Source: Oikopleura dioica
Taxonomy: Eukaryota > Animalia > Chordata
Length of the DNA stretch: 64,000 nt
Assembly: GCA_907165135.1 (NCBI GenBank)
Contig: OU015568.1
Span: forward strand, 1,116,001-1,180,000
Direction of reading: 5' to 3'
How positions within the stretch are numbered: the first letter of the stretch is position 1; every line of letters starts with the position of its first letter. Of this stretch, positions 27,621 to 42,065 are shown one piece after another. The notes under the pieces are model-generated. The model searched no databases, was not told the DNA's origin, and saw only the letters and a program-made list of their open reading frames with translations. Made by a program: the position numbers and the translations under genes.

Positions 27621-29760
27621 TAAGATACGGAAAGAACAACAGTGAATGCTAGAATTTTAAAATTATTTTTTATTGTCCTGCCAAGTGTAAACTAAAGTTG
27701 TAAATACTATTTCAACTCTTATTTTTGTAAATCTGCTATTCTCTGGTCATCAATTCTTGGATATTGTCCTATTCGAATTCGATGACTTTTTCCGTTTTCC
27801 ATTTTTTGGCCGTCTATAATTTATCGAAAATAAAAATTTTAAAAAGATTTGTGCAACGCTTTAATTTTTCTTCACGAGAAGTTCATTTATTTCATTCAAT
27901 TGCATCTAAAATCTCATCAACTGTCACAATACTATTTATATTATTACTGACATTGAAAGCCTTACAGAGGCTTCAGCTCACACCCAATCGGAGAGCCCCA
28001 GGGGAGCTCAGCAGAAACAGAACAGAGCAGTTTTTTTATTCAAAATGCTAGAGAAAGAACAAATTCAACAATGGCTTGATGATTTGATACCAAAGCTCAA
28101 AAGAAAAACGACAAGAAGTCAAAGATGCAGGCTGATTAGGTCGGTCGAGCGACAAGTTTTCAAGAAAAATGACTTTATTGATTGTACGTGGGTTTGCTTT
28201 CAATTCAAAAGAAACCAGCGTGGCGTTCTCACTGGCTTTGTGTTCGACCAAGAATGTCAAGGAAAAAAGAAACCTCTTACTTCTTGGCCGGCGACCGCTT
28301 TTCAAAATCACCTTATAGAACGAAACAAGTTTCTGCTCGGAAAATTAATCTTCAAAGACCAAGTTCGCGAAGAAACAGCATCTTGGATTTCTCATGGTTC
28401 CAACTTCCTTGACGAGTCTGGTGGAGAAGCTCTCGTTTGCAAAGAAAACACTGCCTTCAACGCGCTTTATCGAATTCAATGTTTTGATCCGGCTCTTTTT
28501 ACAGACAAATTCCGAGATAAAATGCTTTTCCGAATCAATCTTGCTTCTGATTTCAAAAAAGCATCAAATGCGAAAAACAGACAGGAAAATTCAATCCCGG
28601 TTCATAAAAATGTATTGAAAAATATTGCCAACATCGAGATCTTCCATCAATCCGATGAGCAATTGGTCGACTGTCTCGGCTGGATTACAATCATGGAAGA
28701 AGGAAATCAGAACTTGCGATATCTTCTTCGAAGAAATAAGCTGACCATTGAAGAAAGAAGAGGGCTGGCAATTCAATTGCGCGATGGATTGAGTTATCTC
28801 TTCGAAATTGGACTTGAGCACAATGATCAGAAGCTCGAAAATATTGTCCTTTTCGGACCAGAGAAGACTCCAAAGTGGATTGATTTTGGTGTCATGCATG
28901 ACCATACTGGCAGAGAGAGTTACCGGCAAATGGGTTACGTAAGAAGGGGAAGCAAGTTTCGGAATTATCAATCTCTAGCAAGTGGAACTCCTACGTACGA
29001 ATCAAGTTCTTGGCGGGCCGCTGAAAAGTAAAAAGTACACTGTGACAATCGGTAAACGATTGTTCTTCTTTCTCTTTTGTGACTGGAAAACTGCATGGAC
29101 TCTTTTATTCAAGCCGATGGATAGAGATGAGAGAACCAGGGTAACCTCTCTTCTAGAGCATTTCAACGCCTCATTCTTAACCACAAGTCGACAGTACTAT
29201 ACTTGGGATGTCACAGACGATGATTTTAATTCCGTCGTTGAAATCATCTCCCTTCCCCACTCATCGAATAAGTTCGTTTTGGACAGCAAGGTGACAAAAT
29301 CAGTGCAAGTTTCCGAGCTGTGCCAGAGGCTCAAAAGAAACCTTCATCTCGACTTTAGAAATATCACTAAAAATGTTGTTGATCAGAAAGACTCAGATTT
29401 ATGCGTTCCAGTTTCGCTTACCACTCTTATTCGATCAGCAATCAGAGAACGCTGTGGCTTATCAAATGTTCGGATCGTCGAAAAAGTCATGGATGCTTTT
29501 AGTGTCGAGCGAATTCTGTATTTTTTGACGATTAGAATTTATCCTCGAAGTTTGGCTGGAATAAACTTGAATCCAAATCGTCCTGAAATGGAGTGGCAAG
29601 CATTTAATAGTTTCGAAGATATCTTGGAGCGTATGATGAAGCCAACGTTTGCATACGAGCCTGGGTGGAACTGGATCCGAAGAGTTGTTATCCGAGACTT
29701 TTTGAATGCTCCGGATAAAATGAAAAATTTCTTGAAGAATGATGATTGAAATTTATTTTT

Positions 29761-29797
29761 GGGACGCGTTTCGGTCTCAGTGGACCTTCGTCAGCCC
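29761..29797 (-). ncRNA. Minimal type I hammerhead ribozyme (3' pLTR copy)
   Basis: Reverse complement reads GGG-CTGACGA-A-GGTC-CACTGA-GACC-GAAA-CGCG-TC-CC, with all core residues present. Confidence 0.85.
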
Positions 29798-30684
29798 TAA
29801 GTACAGATTTTAAATGAAAGTTCAAAAACAGGAAAATCAGTCTCTCACCTAGAGTGGACAATTTCGAATGAAGGCAGAGATTGAAAACATAAAAACATAC
29901 TTCGCTTTCGCGGGCAGATGTAATGGAGCGCCAGAAGAAAGCGAATTACAAATGCTCCATTACAGAAATTTAACTTCAGCGAATTTGATCTGCTTATTCA
30001 AGCAAGGATCATTTAACTTGATCGAAAACGCTTCACAAAGGACACGGTCTTTGTAGTACGGTTGGTTGGAGATAACAGAAATAAAGTTCTTTTCGAAACA
30101 GAATTTGGTTTTGATTAACGCTCTCGATGTAGTAGGCTTGTATTTTGGAGTGTCTGGCTCACTAAGATATTTATCATATTCCTCTCTGAATTTTGGACAC
30201 TTCAAAGAGTGGAAAAACATAGGACTACGATAACGTGGCTCAAAATGTTCACGAATTCTAGTTCCAAGCTGTCTTTTTGTCTCCCCCTGGTAATCCGTTT
30301 TCCCACATGGACATTGGAAATGGTACACCACTCCACTTTTCTGCTCAATTGGTACCGGGCGCTTCCAGGTTGGGTGCAAACATTGTTCTATTCTCACTGT
30401 TTTCCAACAAAGTCTCAGAAAGAACTTCGGGGTAACTTTTTTAAGAATAGCACGCATTTTGCCGCCAATACTGTCGCACCGGGGACCAGTAAAGCTTGCG
30501 CAAAAATTGTGAACTATTTCCCCTTCCACTTTGTAATTCGCTTTCTTCTGGCGCTCCATTACATCTGCCCGCGAAAGCGAAGTATGTTTTTATGTTTTCA
30601 ATCTCTGCCTTCATTCGAAATTGTCCACTCTAGGTGAGAGACTGATTTTCCTGTTTTTGAACTTTCATTTAAAATCTGTACTTA

Positions 30685-30721
30685 GGGCTGACGAAGGTCC
30701 ACTGAGACCGAAACGCGTCCC
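30685..30721 (+). ncRNA. Minimal type I hammerhead ribozyme (inverted pLTR copy, sense to the host gene)
   Basis: CTGACGA 30688-30694, stem II GGTC/GACC, GAAA 30710-30713, palindromic stem III ACGCGT, GUC cleavage triplet ending at 30719. Confidence 0.85.
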
Positions 30722-31474
30722 AAAAATAAATTTCAATCATCATTCATGAGAGGTCAACACCGACAATCTTTCTTGAAGAAGTTCAAATTTCGCTACGAAA
30801 AAATACTTCTAGGCAGAAACTTCGTATTCCAGCGCCCGTTGTCTGTGACTGGAGCCATTTTTTCTCGGGGTGAAGTTTACCGTCATCAAATGGTGATGGA
30901 CAGAGTGGAAAACGGCGAATACATTCTTCAAAATACACAGGAAGACAAGAAAAATCCTCGTTTGCTGCGGATCTCTCAGAGTCGAAAATATTTTCGGGTT
31001 GTAAATGGTTACTTAGAGTTTGTCAAGAATCCCTGTGAAAGAACTGATCAAACCTGGGAGGAAGATACTTGGTACCTCGGATTAGAAGCATATTCTGTTG
31101 AAATTAATTTTTAGTTACAGACTGTGACTAGAAATTAAGTTAAATAAATCATTTGAGCACTTCCTTTAACCAAGGCTGTTTCTTATTTTTTTTAATTTCG
31201 ATTATGCAAAAGCAAGAAATGCAATAGCGAAGACCAATCGGCTGCCAATAAAATTATGGTTGCATATGATCTGAAAGAAGCATATATCCTTATTGATCCT
31301 TTCTTCTTATTAGTTCAAATAAAATCTAAACGGAAATTGGTTCATGAATTTTAGTGGATTCACATTATTGCCTAGTAAATGTTTATTTATTTGTGTCAAA
31401 ATATATTTGACGCATCAATATTTGCGACCAAATACGGTGCTTTTTTACCTCCTTGAAATTTCAGTTCCTCCAAA

Positions 31475-32193: not shown

Positions 32194-33600
32194 TTACTTT
32201 GGACAGTTTTTGCCGTTGTTGCCTTCGTTGGTGTTGTTGCAGTTTTTGTCATTGTTACCATTGTTACCGTTGTTGCCATTGTTAGGTCCGTCGACGCAGT
32301 TCACATTTTCGGGCCAATCGCAGACAAGGAGTTCAGTGTTGAATTGGAGGCCACTTGGGCAGTTCATGGTCCATTCAATGCCATTGGCGCAGGAGAGGTA
32401 CTTGTCACACTTGGTAGGGTGGGGATGGAGGCCATCAGCGCAACCTTCAGCAGGTTCTTCCTCTGGCTTTTCGGTTGTGGTGGTGGTTGGTTCTTGAGTG
32501 GTCGTAGTTGGCTCACCGCAGTTGACATTATTCGGCCAGTCGCAAACCAAAAGTTCAGGGTTGAAGTGGAGTCCAGCAGGGCAATCCATGATCCACTCGT
32601 TGCCATTGGCACATGAGAGGAATTTGTTGCACTCGGTGGGATGGGGATGAAGACCATCGGCACATCCAGCTGGTTCTTCAGTCGTAGTCGTTGTTGGCTC
32701 TGGAGTCGTTGTTGTCGTGGTGGTAGTGGTTGTAGTAGTTGTTGTTGTAGTAGTAGTTGTGGTGGTGGTTGTGGTGGTTGGTTTTTGAGTGGTAGTGGTT
32801 GGCTCAGGGGTGGTTGTTGTCGTGGTAGTTGTTGTTGGTTCTTCAGTTGAAGTCTGAAGAAGGCATTCCGCATTGCAGCTGAAATCAAACCAGCCGCATT
32901 CAGCAAGACACTTTTCAAGATCAAATTCTGGAAGCTCAATCTCCGGGAAGGTCAGTTCTCGAGTCGTAGTTGTGGTAGTGGTTGTGGTGGTCGTTGTTGT
33001 TGGGATCCACTCGAGACATTCGGCAACGCATTTGAGGTCGTCGCAAGTTTTAAGACACTCGTACTTGGGGAATTGGACGTGGCACTTGACGGTGTTTGGG
33101 AAGGCGCACATGCTCTAGAAATGCGTTATAAGAGTCAAAGGGGTAAGTTTATTACTGTTTCAGGGTTGAAAAGGAGGCTTCCGGGGCAAGTCAAGTCGGG
33201 AAGGCGCTTTCCGTTAATGCAGGTGTAGAACTGGTTGCAGTTCTCTTCGTGGGGGTAGATTCCATCTTCACATGGCTAAAAAGACCATAAGTTTTATTTC
33301 AACCAAAGATGTTGGGCAAAAAATGGCCTTTCTTAGCTGGTTAAACACATAAATCTCTAGAGTAGAAGTTATTTAATTCGAAGAATATTTTACCTTCCAA
33401 TTTCGATACAAGCACTTTCCACAATCAACCAAGTTCTCCCGGAAATCTCCGTCGAGGCAAATGTCCTTGCAAGGAAAGATCAGTCCATTAGGCAACTCAA
33501 CACCTGGAAACTCAATGATTCCAACAATGTCCTCAATGTTCAAATCTCTTGGCGCTCTTCCCGCCTGGGAAAGGCCGATAAAACCGAGTGCCAGTTTCAT
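32194..33600 (-). CDS. Peritrophin-like protein with three CBM14 chitin-binding domains and Thr-rich mucin linkers
   Basis: CADGLHPHPTECNKFLSC...CPAGLHFNPELLVCDWP twice, plus a third copy at ~33110-33270. Signal peptide MKLALGFIGLSQA. Confidence 0.9.
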
Positions 33601-40064: not shown

Positions 40065-42065
40065 ATGGCTTTCGAGTTAAAAAATATAAAGAAATCGTTA
40101 ACTGATCCGGAAAGACGCACATCTTTAATTTTTTTGACTTTATTCTGTAAGTACCAATCTTTATCTCTAATAAAAGGCTGATATTAAAAGCCTCTCTGAA
40201 GGGGGTGGTGGTCGAGAAAATTTTTTTGGACTTTTTAAAATTTTGATATTATTCTTAGATTCCTTGATAAAAAAGGAGCATTTTTGGTCTCTAGCTTTTT
40301 TTGATTGGACCAACTTTATTTAAGAAAATTTTCGATTTTATACTTTGAAATCGCCATTTTCGGGTGTTTTTCTCACTAAAACCGATTCAAAATTGTTTTT
40401 TCATTGCGAATTTATGTTTCTTGATCATATATCTTTTCGGGTTGACTTCGTTAATAGATCATATGATTTTGTATCGAACGTTTTCGTTTATTGGATAAAC
40501 TTCATCAGGATACTAAACTTAAGATGAACGAAAAAGAAACAGAGGAAAAAGAATACTTTTATGTTGAGAGAGCAGTGTGAAATTGCTAACTGAGGAAAAC
40601 AGAAAAACAAGATCAAAAAATGGCTGTTTTTAGTCGAGCGCCAAGGTGGCCCAAAACATCTATTTCTTGATCATATTTCATTTATAAAAATCTAAAAAAA
40701 TTACGATTATTGTGATGTTTACGAGAATTTCATTGAAAAATGATTGAAATGACGATTTTTTCAGAAAACAACATATTTTCATTCAAATACTATTTTCTTT
40801 TCTAACTGGGTGAACTTTGTAAAACTAAGCCGCCCACACGCACAAGGGTTTAAACTTTCCTCTCGGTAAGTTTTATTCCGAAAAAAATATTAAGGGGATC
40901 GAGTTTTTTAGGTCAAGAGATTGGTCTACTTTGAAGGAATTTTTCACCATTTTTTCGAAAAAATATTTTTTTCAAACATAGCCGCCCACATAAATTGGAC
41001 CCTTTTTAACTTATTTTCAATCAGAGAAAAAAAATTTTTTTTGAAAAAATTGAAGTTTTTTAGGTTGAAAAAAGTCTTAGTCTCGACCACCACCCCCTTA
41101 ATAATAAGAGACTCTCGAATTGAAGAAACCTGAAATTTTTTTCTATCGTCATAAGAAGCTTTTAACATGCATTTTTTCAGGTGGAGGATTGGTTTTCATT
41201 GGACTACACATTTACAGGTGATGGCTCGGCAACCTGCGTCAGGGCTTCTTTTGGACTCTGACTTGAGGTTATGACTTGAGGTTGCCGAGTCGAGTTAAAG
41301 ATCGCTTGACGGCCTTGGCTTTAAATGCGAACACACAAAAATGAACGAAACCATCACGAACCAAATCCTCGAAGACAAAGTCTACTGCGAGGAAACTATG
41401 ATGGTTGGTAATTTACCATATTGTGGTTGTTATAGTTTGGTTCTGAGTCTCAGATACCGGATCTCCTAAAAAGCGCAATCTCATGGGAGAATTAGTAAAA
41501 GTCAATGTCAAATACTCCTTTTTAATCAAACGTAGCCCGATCTCCGCGAATTCATAGACTCTAAGCGAGACAATCACACCTGGTGCGGCTTTCTTCACGA
41601 CAATGTTGGTCACCAGAAGACAAGAGCAAAGTCGCCGATTTATGCTTGCTTTCCAGCCGTCCCAGCTGACATGCAAATCCAAGTGACTTGCCCGATGAAC
41701 TCAACAGTTAGGACCGGACAGGATCGCCGTTTAGGATGGACAGTCAGCCGATGGTGTAATAGCAATGGAACTTGGGATATAAGCAGCTCCCTGCTCCGGA
41801 CTCTTTATTTTATTTCTGATACTTTCGAGAGTAACTATTAAATTTCTCTGTTCAGGAGAGAGAAGGAGACTGCGGATGCCACTACAACGAGAATTGGCAG
41901 AAAAGTCTATTCAAATTGATGCTTCCTTTAATCATTTTCACTTTCTTTACTCTCTGCGCTTACATTCTTAGAAATCGAATTTCGGATTCAATCTGCTCTT
42001 TTCGGCGGAACAGTCAATTCAGCCCCGATCCCTTGATTCTGGACTCACCAGGACGAGAAAATTGA
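40065..42065 (+). CDS. Hydrophobic N-terminus + class-B-GPCR hormone-receptor (HRM)-like domain + single TM, copy A
   Basis: Five exons join in frame. TWCG...ACFPAV....VTCP....SRWCNSNGTWD matches HRM Cys/Trp spacing. TM LMLPLIIFTFFTLCAYIL, then a short tail and stop. The exon-4 donor reads ATAAG (41779) where copy B has GTAAG. Confidence 0.6.
40431..40662 (-). mobile_element. 232-bp hammerhead-bearing retroposed element (solo pLTR / retrozyme-like)
   Basis: 14-bp direct repeats TTTCTTGATCATAT (40417-40430, 40663-40676). MITE copy 1 has the single empty site (~4263-4276). No ORF. Confidence 0.8.
40471..40513 (-). ncRNA. Minimal type I hammerhead ribozyme
   Basis: Reverse complement reads GTATC-CTGATGA-A-GTTTAT-CCA-ATAAAC-GAAA-ACGT-TC-GATAC: 5-bp stem I, 6-bp stem II, palindromic stem III, UUC cleavage triplet. 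Confidence 0.88.

Follow-up and report, generated by a model that had tools for sequence, protein, structure and literature searches.

The insertion at 29740-30769 of the window (i.e., the whole 64,000-nt stretch of Oikopleura dioica DNA that we analysed) is, with a probability of about 0.85, a recent, dead-on-arrival copy of a Penelope-like element (PLE) that sits in the final exon of a gene on the plus strand, with a hammerhead ribozyme that is predicted to be masked in host RNA. The 1030-bp segment interrupts an otherwise open plus-strand ORF and is flanked by 11-bp target site duplications (TSDs). By sequence reading, the left copy TTCTTGAAGAA covers 29729-29739 and its 11 nt recur at 30770-30780; both copies also agree with a paralogue on C4, which is contiguous across the insertion point. 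A search for the 31-nt empty-site pattern in metagenome contigs gave no match, a result that has no bearing on polymorphism. A preliminary description of the locus, made from the sequence, had placed the insertion at 29740-30768; its start holds while the end lies at 30769.

The interrupted gene spans 28045-31114 on the plus strand, with exon 1 at 28045-28938, a 40-nt intron at 28939-28978 (GT..AG, read from the sequence) and an exon 2 that is split by the insertion (28979-29739 and 30781-31114). It was searched exon by exon, and its lengths are from coordinate arithmetic. The gene is kinase-like, with a Pkinase match that narrowly misses the cut-off (E 2.6e-7), and is one of a family that counts at least 150 loci, many of them broken. 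In the protein atlas, the host exon gives no taxa and only weak papain-like leads (0.90-0.91), whose recognition does not attain the reliable range. Eight nucleotides into the insertion, the host frame (ORF 28982-29749) ends at a premature TGA (29747-29749), in line with the stop codon mentioned in the preliminary description; the host ORF continues in frame past the insertion, and its last ~110 codons are lost. This is the certain damage, and the insertion into the last exon is an ordinary gene-breaking event.

The insertion consists of three parts, namely a minus-strand 3' end of a PLE, an inverted copy of its UTR and a 27-nt tail. The sense copy has a 220-nt 3'UTR (29740-29959, minus strand), which aligns collinearly, at 99% identity, with the 3' ends of further copies in the genome; when comparing these 3' ends, it terminates with ...CAATCATCA at 29740 without a tail. 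The inverted copy of the entire 3'UTR (30530-30742, plus strand, 213 nt) is 100% identical to 29740-29952. The inverted repeat has arms of 216 nt each (29737-29952 and 30530-30745, 100% complementary, 577 nt apart), where the outermost 3 nt pair only thanks to a nearly palindromic TSD, i.e., the element's share is 213 nt (29740-29952 and 30530-30742). The tail TTCATGAGAGGTCAACACCGACAATCT (30743-30769, plus strand) is present only beyond the inverted arm and matches the PLE 'tail' described in PMC8557442 and PMC11167929; an inverted 5'-truncated copy with a one-sided tail is typical of PLEs (PMC8557442). Within the inverted arm, an AATAAA (30725-30730, plus strand) lies 6 nt past the predicted scissile bond of the ribozyme and 12 nt short of where the element ends. 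The hexamer is found at the matching place in 4/4 subfamilies, with a register that varies with the length of the A-run, and is a candidate poly(A) signal.

Between the arms, a 5'-truncated ORF remnant (29960-30529, minus strand) comprises the C-terminal 189 codons and the stop codon. Where a GIY-YIG remnant had been described between the repeats, homologues indicate that the endonuclease is present and its domain complete, while the missing part is the reverse transcriptase (RT). Along 197 aa, the minus-strand ORF from 30559 to 29960 is 73% identical to the C-terminus of P0001, a protein with RT and GIY-YIG. Its residues 72-105 show a local alignment with the PF01541 region of P0011 (29.1 bits for that region, cut-off 22.6), and the motif VVY...YQG...R...E can be discerned. 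When scanned directly with Pfam, the 199-aa window ORF gave no family match, i.e., GIY-YIG is assigned via homologues. With regard to the hallmarks of EN+ PLEs, RT upstream of the endonuclease is found in a longer copy (L031, 99% identical), whose 614-aa ORF carries RVT_1 upstream (33.8 bits, cut-off 29.6) and whose homologues carry PF00078 together with PF01541. The window copy is 5'-truncated at 30529 and thus without RT; it shows GIY-YIG, the inverted terminal repeat, the one-end tail and the TSD. Judged by RVT_1 and the homologues of the longer copy, the insertion is a PLE, and the perfect repeat, the TSD and the RT-endonuclease homology bear out the Penelope-type insertion with an inverted 3' arm that had been proposed.

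Like the canonical EN+ PLEs (Penelope/Poseidon, Neptune, Nematis; PMC8557442, PMC11167929), the element combines RT with a C-terminal GIY-YIG in longer copies, heavy 5' truncation, variable TSDs, a hammerhead in the repeat, an inverted 5'-side copy that forms flanking repeats, and a short extension at one end only. It differs from them in the length of the tail (27 nt vs. 30-40 nt) and in an inverted arm that is nearly fixed in length and equals the 3'UTR. Unlike PLEs with pseudo-LTRs (pLTRs), the copies examined here show no direct (tandem) pLTR, the inverted layout being the sole repeat arrangement found.

We find 110 DNA matches to the element in the genome, several of them at 99% identity; according to the genome paper, PLEs are "almost absent" from the assembly (PMC8008620). 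The ribozyme motifs number at least 54, 34 of which form 17 outward-facing pairs, i.e., a ribozyme lies on each strand in at least 17 of the roughly 37 insertions of the element family. Among 13 dual-arm copies, the arms within one copy are 95-100% identical to each other and 205-217 nt long in 11 cases, while the spacer between them ranges from 139 to 2804 nt. Among dozens of copies, the arm sequence is 77-100% identical. In copy L032, both arms share a private run of 10 A, which fits the copying of both arms from one template. In each of the 12 dual-arm copies that were inspected, the tail sits at the inverted-arm end and never at the end of the sense copy, and the TSDs of five other copies measure 10-14 bp (11 bp at the window site). 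As a separate observation, the inverted arm ends 9-17 nt (median 12) past the first base of the stop codon in 12/15 dual-arm copies, where six older, nested copies are too degraded to add much to the count. This boundary, which nearly always falls some 13 nt past the stop codon, holds across the subfamilies examined, wherever the sense copy is truncated.

Each ~213-bp repeat had been said to hold a complete minimal hammerhead, which the sequence and its covariation confirm. The 32-nt core CUGACGA-A-GGUC...GACC-GAAA-CGCG-UC occurs exactly twice in the window (expectation in the shuffled window: 0.01 matches), once in the sense of the element (29794 to 29763, minus strand; helix I flanks 29761-29797) and once in the sense of the host (30688-30719, plus strand; predicted scissile bond after the C at 30719). 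Both are assigned by pattern match and covariance model, with our own model R1 giving 79.4 bits (E 9e-18) for the motif at 29763-29794. The core CUGANGA ... GAAA ... H17 is exact in both arms and invariant across 12 aligned variants. Known criteria for PLE-type hammerheads are an unpaired nucleotide, a G10.1-C11.1 pair and a palindromic 15.2-16.2 / loop 3 (PMC4209133); the respective extra A between 9 and 10.1, GGUC/GACC with G10.1-C11.1 and the palindromic A-CGCG-U are all present. Among the four genomic subfamilies, 4/10 pairs of helices I and II are altered on both sides, 87.5% of the cells are paired (vs. at most 46% with partners slid) and the covariation score is 0.267 (vs. 0.110 in shuffles and at most 0.08 when slid), where the basis of four subfamilies plus one relative comprises few independent events. 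A search for related loci gave two short metagenomic relatives, both of which R1 failed to recognise. Read by eye, the metagenomic relative L047 shows different yet complementary helices I and II, a palindromic ACAUGU, and an A at the invariant G5. In terms of sequence, the motif in each arm is a genuine PLE-type minimal hammerhead, with C17 as the putative site of self-cleavage.

A check with Rfam models, as had been suggested, yields no hammerhead match, neither at gathering threshold on the window nor at E<=10 on 1.2 kb. Genome-wide, RF00163 gives 0 matches; it is silent in control genomes too, such that the negative result carries no information on this ribozyme class. The best, sub-threshold match of an 81-nt query is nevertheless a hammerhead family, namely Hammerhead_HH9 (RF02275; 19.4 bits vs. 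a gathering score of 52), with a full-length alignment over core and helix II. Unlike in HH9 and Hammerhead_1 (RF00163), helix III is almost absent, and with a score below gathering the motif is no member by Rfam criteria (clan CL00010). As a by-product, the covariance model R1 finds these motifs where Rfam does not.

The metazoan PLE minimal type-I hammerheads (PMC4209133) share the conserved core, the unpaired nucleotide between A9 and G10.1, G10.1-C11.1, a 1-bp helix III closed by a palindromic tetraloop (here ACGCGU), a short helix I and compensatory changes within families. In contrast to these, helix I beside the core has only 2 bp in the window's subfamily (both G-C) and the activity of the ribozyme is putative; helix II measures 4-5 bp here vs. 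7-8 bp in Schistosoma (PMC4209133). Pairs of opposite-strand hammerheads 100-700 bp apart have already been noted in Schistosoma (PMC4209133). Inverted upstream copies, tails and opposite-strand minimal hammerheads are already described for PLEs (PMC4209133, PMC8557442), and the geometry, which the preliminary description considered outstanding, recurs with the same layout at the 17 or more loci mentioned above.

All statements on host transcripts are predictions from sequence and folding. The hammerhead of the right arm (C17 at 30719) is sense to the interrupted gene, as had been recognised. From this, a silencing in three independent ways was proposed, i.e., the host-sense hammerhead cleaves host transcripts after 30719 in addition to the effects of stop codon and dsRNA arms. 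For such a scenario speak the complete and intact host-sense motif, the covariation of its helices within the family, which implies an RNA structure under selection, and the presence of both the stop codon and the predicted hairpin. However, the ribozyme is of the dimer type (1-bp helix III), the host-sense RNA holds one sense copy only, and the antisense arm is transcribed first. In the MFE fold of 29700-30800 (plus strand), all 216 arm positions are paired (duplex -405 kcal/mol), helix II has a pair probability of 0.0, and each ribozyme nucleotide pairs with the antisense copy at probability 1.0. For the isolated monomer, the hammerhead fold has +1.6 kcal/mol vs. -11.6 kcal/mol for a rival hairpin. 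The cofold of two copies is an extended intermolecular duplex and no double-hammerhead fold, which nearest-neighbour energies cannot judge. Such folding leaves out the hammerhead's tertiary contacts, helicases and co-transcriptional kinetics; a short active window for the ribozyme or the dimerisation of two transcripts is conceivable. Published data show no detectable in vitro cleavage for single minimal hammerheads and weak activity for dimers (PMC4209133), 8/9 Xenopus dimer elements without cleavage (bioRxiv 10.64898/2026.07.22.740005) and, for an anole PLE, no in vivo RNA-seq ends at the ribozyme site (PMC11167929). Self-cleavage of the host transcript at 30719 is unlikely because we face a lone sense copy of a dimer-type, intrinsically weak ribozyme that is predicted to be buried in a duplex. 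Furthermore, there is no selection for other silencing routes since the stop codon alone inactivates the gene. Thus, from the three-way silencing, which is highly improbable as a whole, the stop codon is real and the hairpin predicted, while the cleavage is not supported.

The long dsRNA fold fares better, i.e., a read-through RNA would form a perfect duplex of 213-216 bp that hides the sense ribozyme. This duplex could feed RNAi, and the AAUAAA of the arm could end the transcript early; it lies past the hairpin and so would not stop the hairpin from forming. One might go further and consider the hairpin rather than the ribozyme to be what matters, such that the 213-bp dsRNA, made by read-through that starts at the host's promoter, is diced into small RNAs, which lower host mRNA and target the shared 3'UTR of all family copies in trans. 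The perfection of the predicted duplex and the presence of the arm sequence in dozens of copies are compatible with this, and there are publications on RNA interference and dsRNA in O. dioica (e.g., PMC5345011). Still, the host gene is only one of many, often broken paralogues and may be weakly expressed or silent, and we regard this scenario as possible but doubtful. A quite different reading takes the locus for no retroelement at all but for a foldback/MITE-like DNA transposon with 213-bp TIRs and a captured endonuclease fragment, or for a palindrome that long-read assembly created artefactually. Superficially, long and perfect terminal inverted repeats within a TSD do resemble a foldback element, and the assembly (apparently OKI2018_I69) is Nanopore-based (PMC8008620). 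Yet the arms consist of the 3'UTR of the element itself, and the interior follows the 3' end of the RT-endonuclease ORF collinearly. 5' truncation varies the interior length at constant arms, the two ends are asymmetric in that only one has a tail, and TSD length is variable. An assembly artefact is also argued against by the at least 17 independent loci with the same layout, each with its own TSD. Both variants are hardly credible and are rejected given the 3'UTR arms, the one-sided tail and the many independent loci.

The dead-on-arrival PLE insertion that we favour can be modelled on the in vitro behaviour of an anole PLE, in which extension takes place on both target strands and the tail corresponds to what lies between two start sites of the RT (PMC11167929). 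By analogy, the element endonuclease would have made a staggered target cut that led to the 11-bp TSD, and both target 3'-OH ends would have primed reverse transcription on element RNA. The first cDNA, begun at the inner start site, would have crossed the 3'UTR and entered the coding part for the endonuclease, 790 nt in all, and become the minus-strand sense copy. The second would have started 27 nt further out, producing the 'tail', and run through the 3'UTR only (213 nt), producing the inverted arm. The two cDNA ends were probably joined at an AAA microhomology. Since the UTR carries the hammerhead and is present in both arms, the finished insertion holds one ribozyme per strand, which would serve the element's own RNA biology and not that of the host gene. 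L1 5'-inversions by twin priming, a model attributed to Ostertag & Kazazian (2001), reportedly likewise start from both target strands priming cDNA on element RNA, with microhomology-joined cDNAs yielding an inverted segment within one TSD pair. The inversion point of L1 is said to vary, with segments that are adjacent parts of one RNA, whereas the inverted segment here duplicates the 3' end at a stereotyped length. Dual priming by itself leaves the near-constant arm length unexplained. As a speculative and rather improbable idea, the arm length may reflect a programmed halt of the second reverse transcription, the one primed from the top strand, which a terminating ribosome or an element protein bound at the ORF/UTR boundary could bring about, i.e., a natural 'toeprint'.

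The insertion shows no new ribozyme-based gene silencing. Any PLE insertion that is built in this way places one hammerhead on each strand, and in host transcripts the ribozyme should be masked by the antisense copy that the insertion itself supplies. If the toeprint idea were true, such a halt would tie PLE integration to translation in cis, and each such insertion would carry a perfect hairpin, such that host read-through could feed family-wide RNAi. For the integration mechanism of PLEs, which is poorly understood, the arm boundary offers a clue that can be tested cheaply. For O. dioica, the insertion shows a low-copy PLE family that was recently active in a very compact chordate genome and is able to knock out genes.

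The insertion shows a 216-nt inverted repeat (29737-29952 and 30530-30745; 100% complementarity, 577 nt spacing), and its flanks carry an 11-bp direct repeat, i.e., the target-site duplication (TSD) TTCTTGAAGAA at 29729-29739 and 30770-30780. The insert thus occupies 29740-30769 and is 1030 bp long. Since the TSD 11-mer is nearly palindromic, the repeat looks 3 nt longer than the element's 213 nt. The right arm (30530-30742, plus strand) is an inverted copy of the element's 3'UTR and is followed by 27 nt outside the repeat (30743-30769). When 29740-30780 (1041 nt = 3 x 347) is removed, the ORF reaching to 29749 and the one reaching to 31114 (both plus strand) share one frame. The closest paralogue of the host gene, on sequence C4 of the same genome, is uninterrupted at exactly the insertion point and has a single open frame.

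The element's ORF runs on the minus strand from 30559 to 29960, its real part starting at the arm junction (30529). Over 197 aa, its product shares 73% identity with the C-terminus of the homologous protein P0001 (680 aa, reverse transcriptase (RT) plus GIY-YIG), and residues 72-105 (VVY..YQG..R..E) align with the PF01541 domain of a second homologue, P0011; a direct Pfam scan of the insert ORF did not call the GIY-YIG domain. Searching the same genome with the element DNA gave 110 matches, several of them longer at 99% identity. The matching locus L031 contains a 614-aa ORF in which RVT_1, passing the Pfam cut-off, precedes this same endonuclease part, and homologues of this ORF combine PF00078 and PF01541. 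Given this RT plus endonuclease ORF in longer copies and homologues, the element is a Penelope-like retrotransposon (PLE) on the minus strand, of which the window copy retains only the endonuclease coding part and a 220-nt 3'UTR. The structural identification as a PLE insertion, already proposed in the preliminary description together with the inverted repeats, is supported, and the initial observation itself is confirmed.

The arrangement of tail and inverted arm is the published PLE layout. The PLE tail corresponds to the segment that separates two internal RT start sites, and both target strands are cut and then extended by the PLE protein (PMC11167929). Among the dual-arm copies inspected, i.e., insertions with both arms, the conserved 27-nt tail follows the inverted arm in 12/12, the sense copy ends with ...CAATCATCA directly against the TSD, again in 12/12, and TSDs measure 10-14 bp. 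Arms of the same copy are 95-100% identical (n=13 dual-arm copies; 100% for the window copy), members of the window's subfamily show 1-3% divergence from one another, and copy L032 has a private 10-A run common to both of its arms. These sequence comparisons fit with both arms being copied from a single template at insertion and with the window insertion being very recent. The junction of sense copy and inverted arm is AAA, which is present in both parental sequences and suggests that the two were joined by microhomology. We also note an AAUAAA hexamer at 30725-30730 (plus strand) and 29752-29757 (minus strand), which follows the cleavage site of the hammerhead by 6 nt and precedes the 3' end of the element by 12 nt. 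It is found at the corresponding place in 4/4 subfamilies, and the element's poly(A) cleavage site and its inner RT start site may be one and the same.

Each arm contains the motif CUGACGA-A-GGUC(CACUGA)GACC-GAAA-CGCG-UC, which matches twice in the window (GC content ~40%) compared to 0.01 expected matches. It has all features of metazoan PLE minimal hammerheads listed by Cervera & de la Pena (PMC4209133), among them the conserved core, the G10.1-C11.1 pair and a 1-bp helix III with the palindromic loop ACGCGU. Within four subfamilies of the same genome (77-100% identical overall) the core is invariant, while helices I and II show compensatory changes (U-A to C-G, C-G to A-U, and G-C to A-U at 1.1-2.1). 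Both sides changed in 4/10 pairs, and 87.5% of the cells are paired compared to at most 46% with partners slid, though this covariation reflects few independent events. In a metagenomic relative (76% amino-acid identity of the endonuclease), helices I (UUAGC/GCUAA) and II differ but are complementary, and the palindrome is ACAUGU; this copy is probably dead because an A replaces the invariant G5.

Rfam gave no match at the gathering threshold, nor at E<=10 on 1.2 kb, and RF00163 had 0 matches over the whole genome. When an 81-nt stretch was queried, Hammerhead_HH9 scored highest among 4227 Rfam families, with 19.4 bits (gathering score 52), helix III being deleted in the alignment. R1, a covariance model that we built from 12 hammerhead variants, scores both window copies at 79.4 bits. 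Formally, the lack of a covariance-model hit that had been named beforehand as speaking against a hammerhead holds for Rfam, but such a negative is uninformative for this ribozyme class. Genome-wide, R1 finds at least 54 motifs, 34 of which form 17 outward-facing (-,+) pairs. The inverted geometry, which the preliminary description had considered to stand out, is hence the family norm and was already published. R1 does not pick up a different PLE-type minimal hammerhead at 40476-40508 (minus strand; CUGAUGA-A-GUUUAU..AUAAAC-GAAA-ACGU-UC, palindrome AACGUU), located in a short element at 40417-40676.

The right-arm hammerhead (30688-30719) is, as described before, on the host sense strand with C17 at 30719. 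Self-cleavage of a host transcript after this position, which had been predicted as well, is unlikely in our models, because the ribozyme is of the dimer type, would be buried in a duplex, and has a disfavoured active fold even in isolation. Self-cleavage of single minimal hammerheads was undetectable and dimers or trimers cleaved only weakly (PMC4209133), 8/9 Xenopus dimer elements showed no cleavage (bioRxiv 10.64898/2026.07.22.740005), and for the anole PLE, RNA-seq revealed no ends at the ribozyme site (PMC11167929). Host-sense RNA carries one sense and one antisense ribozyme copy. In the predicted fold of 29700-30800 (plus strand), 216/216 arm positions are paired in register (duplex -405 kcal/mol), with pair probabilities of 1.0 for the arm duplex and 0.0 for hammerhead helix II. 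Transcription reaches the antisense arm before the sense arm, whose distal end holds the ribozyme, so that the arm helix could zip up to the ribozyme while it emerges. For the isolated motif, the hammerhead secondary structure has +1.6 kcal/mol compared to -11.6 for a hairpin pairing the core with the palindromic box, in energy models that disregard tertiary contacts and proteins. Next to the core, helix I of the window subfamily has two G-C pairs only.

The host gene starts at 28045 (plus strand) and has a sole intron at 28939-28978 (40 nt, GT..AG, frame restored). Searching its exons one by one, the N-terminal part is kinase-like (Pkinase, E 2.6e-7), with 30.8 bits slightly below the Pfam cut-off of 31.7; the C-terminal part of the gene (28045-31114) has weak papain-like similarity. 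The family comprises at least 150 paralogous loci with 30-68% amino-acid identity, many of them with stops. Paralogues, found e.g. at C1:14.5-16.6 Mb, C2:11.0-12.7 Mb and C4:5752218-5752823, cluster in particular chromosome regions. The TGA at 29747-29749, 8 nt inside the insert, terminates the host frame such that ~110 C-terminal codons are lost. Read-through RNA would form a long perfect dsRNA hairpin, the predicted duplex spanning 216 bp; for O. dioica, RNA interference and dsRNA are the subject of existing papers. The AAUAAA at 30725-30730 could also cut host transcripts short. An ATG in the tail (30746) shares the frame of the host codons that follow (122-codon ORF, 30746-31114, plus strand), probably by coincidence. 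Just downstream of the gene, a 305-aa ORF (32194-33111, minus strand) has two chitin-binding-like cysteine domains with long, mucin-like threonine runs between them.

The inner end of the arms is stereotyped. Arm length is 205-217 nt in 11/13 copies despite spacers of 139-2804 nt, and in 12/15 dual-arm copies the arm ends 9-17 nt (median 12) past the first base of the ORF's stop codon (subfamilies examined; two offsets read by eye, the others by script). The stereotyped end was noted for window positions 29949-29962 and 30530 and for the element-matching loci L031, L032, L033, L034, L004, L007, L008, L009, L010, L013 and L050. The remaining dual-arm copies have arms of ~100 nt (two) or an arm running into the ORF (one). 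In contrast, the point at which the sense copy is 5'-truncated varies by kilobases. Such a fixed end resembles what an RT halted at the stop codon by a ribosome or protein would leave. A terminating ribosome or bound protein blocking the second reverse transcription would explain it, and a discrete RNA 5' end would do so too. Two complementary pairs interleave within the first ~65 nt of the UTR (29900-29966, minus strand), namely TGTAATGGAGC/GCTCCATTACA, which overlaps the stop codon, and TTCGCTTTC/GAAAGCGAA, which the metagenomic relative (L047:1176-1226) preserves through compensatory changes as AAGGCACTTTC/GAAAGTGCCTT. Judged by sequence, they may form a pseudoknot-like protein-binding structure. 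PLEs were described as "almost absent" from the O. dioica assembly (PMC8008620); the family found here is indeed low-copy, yet looks recently active.
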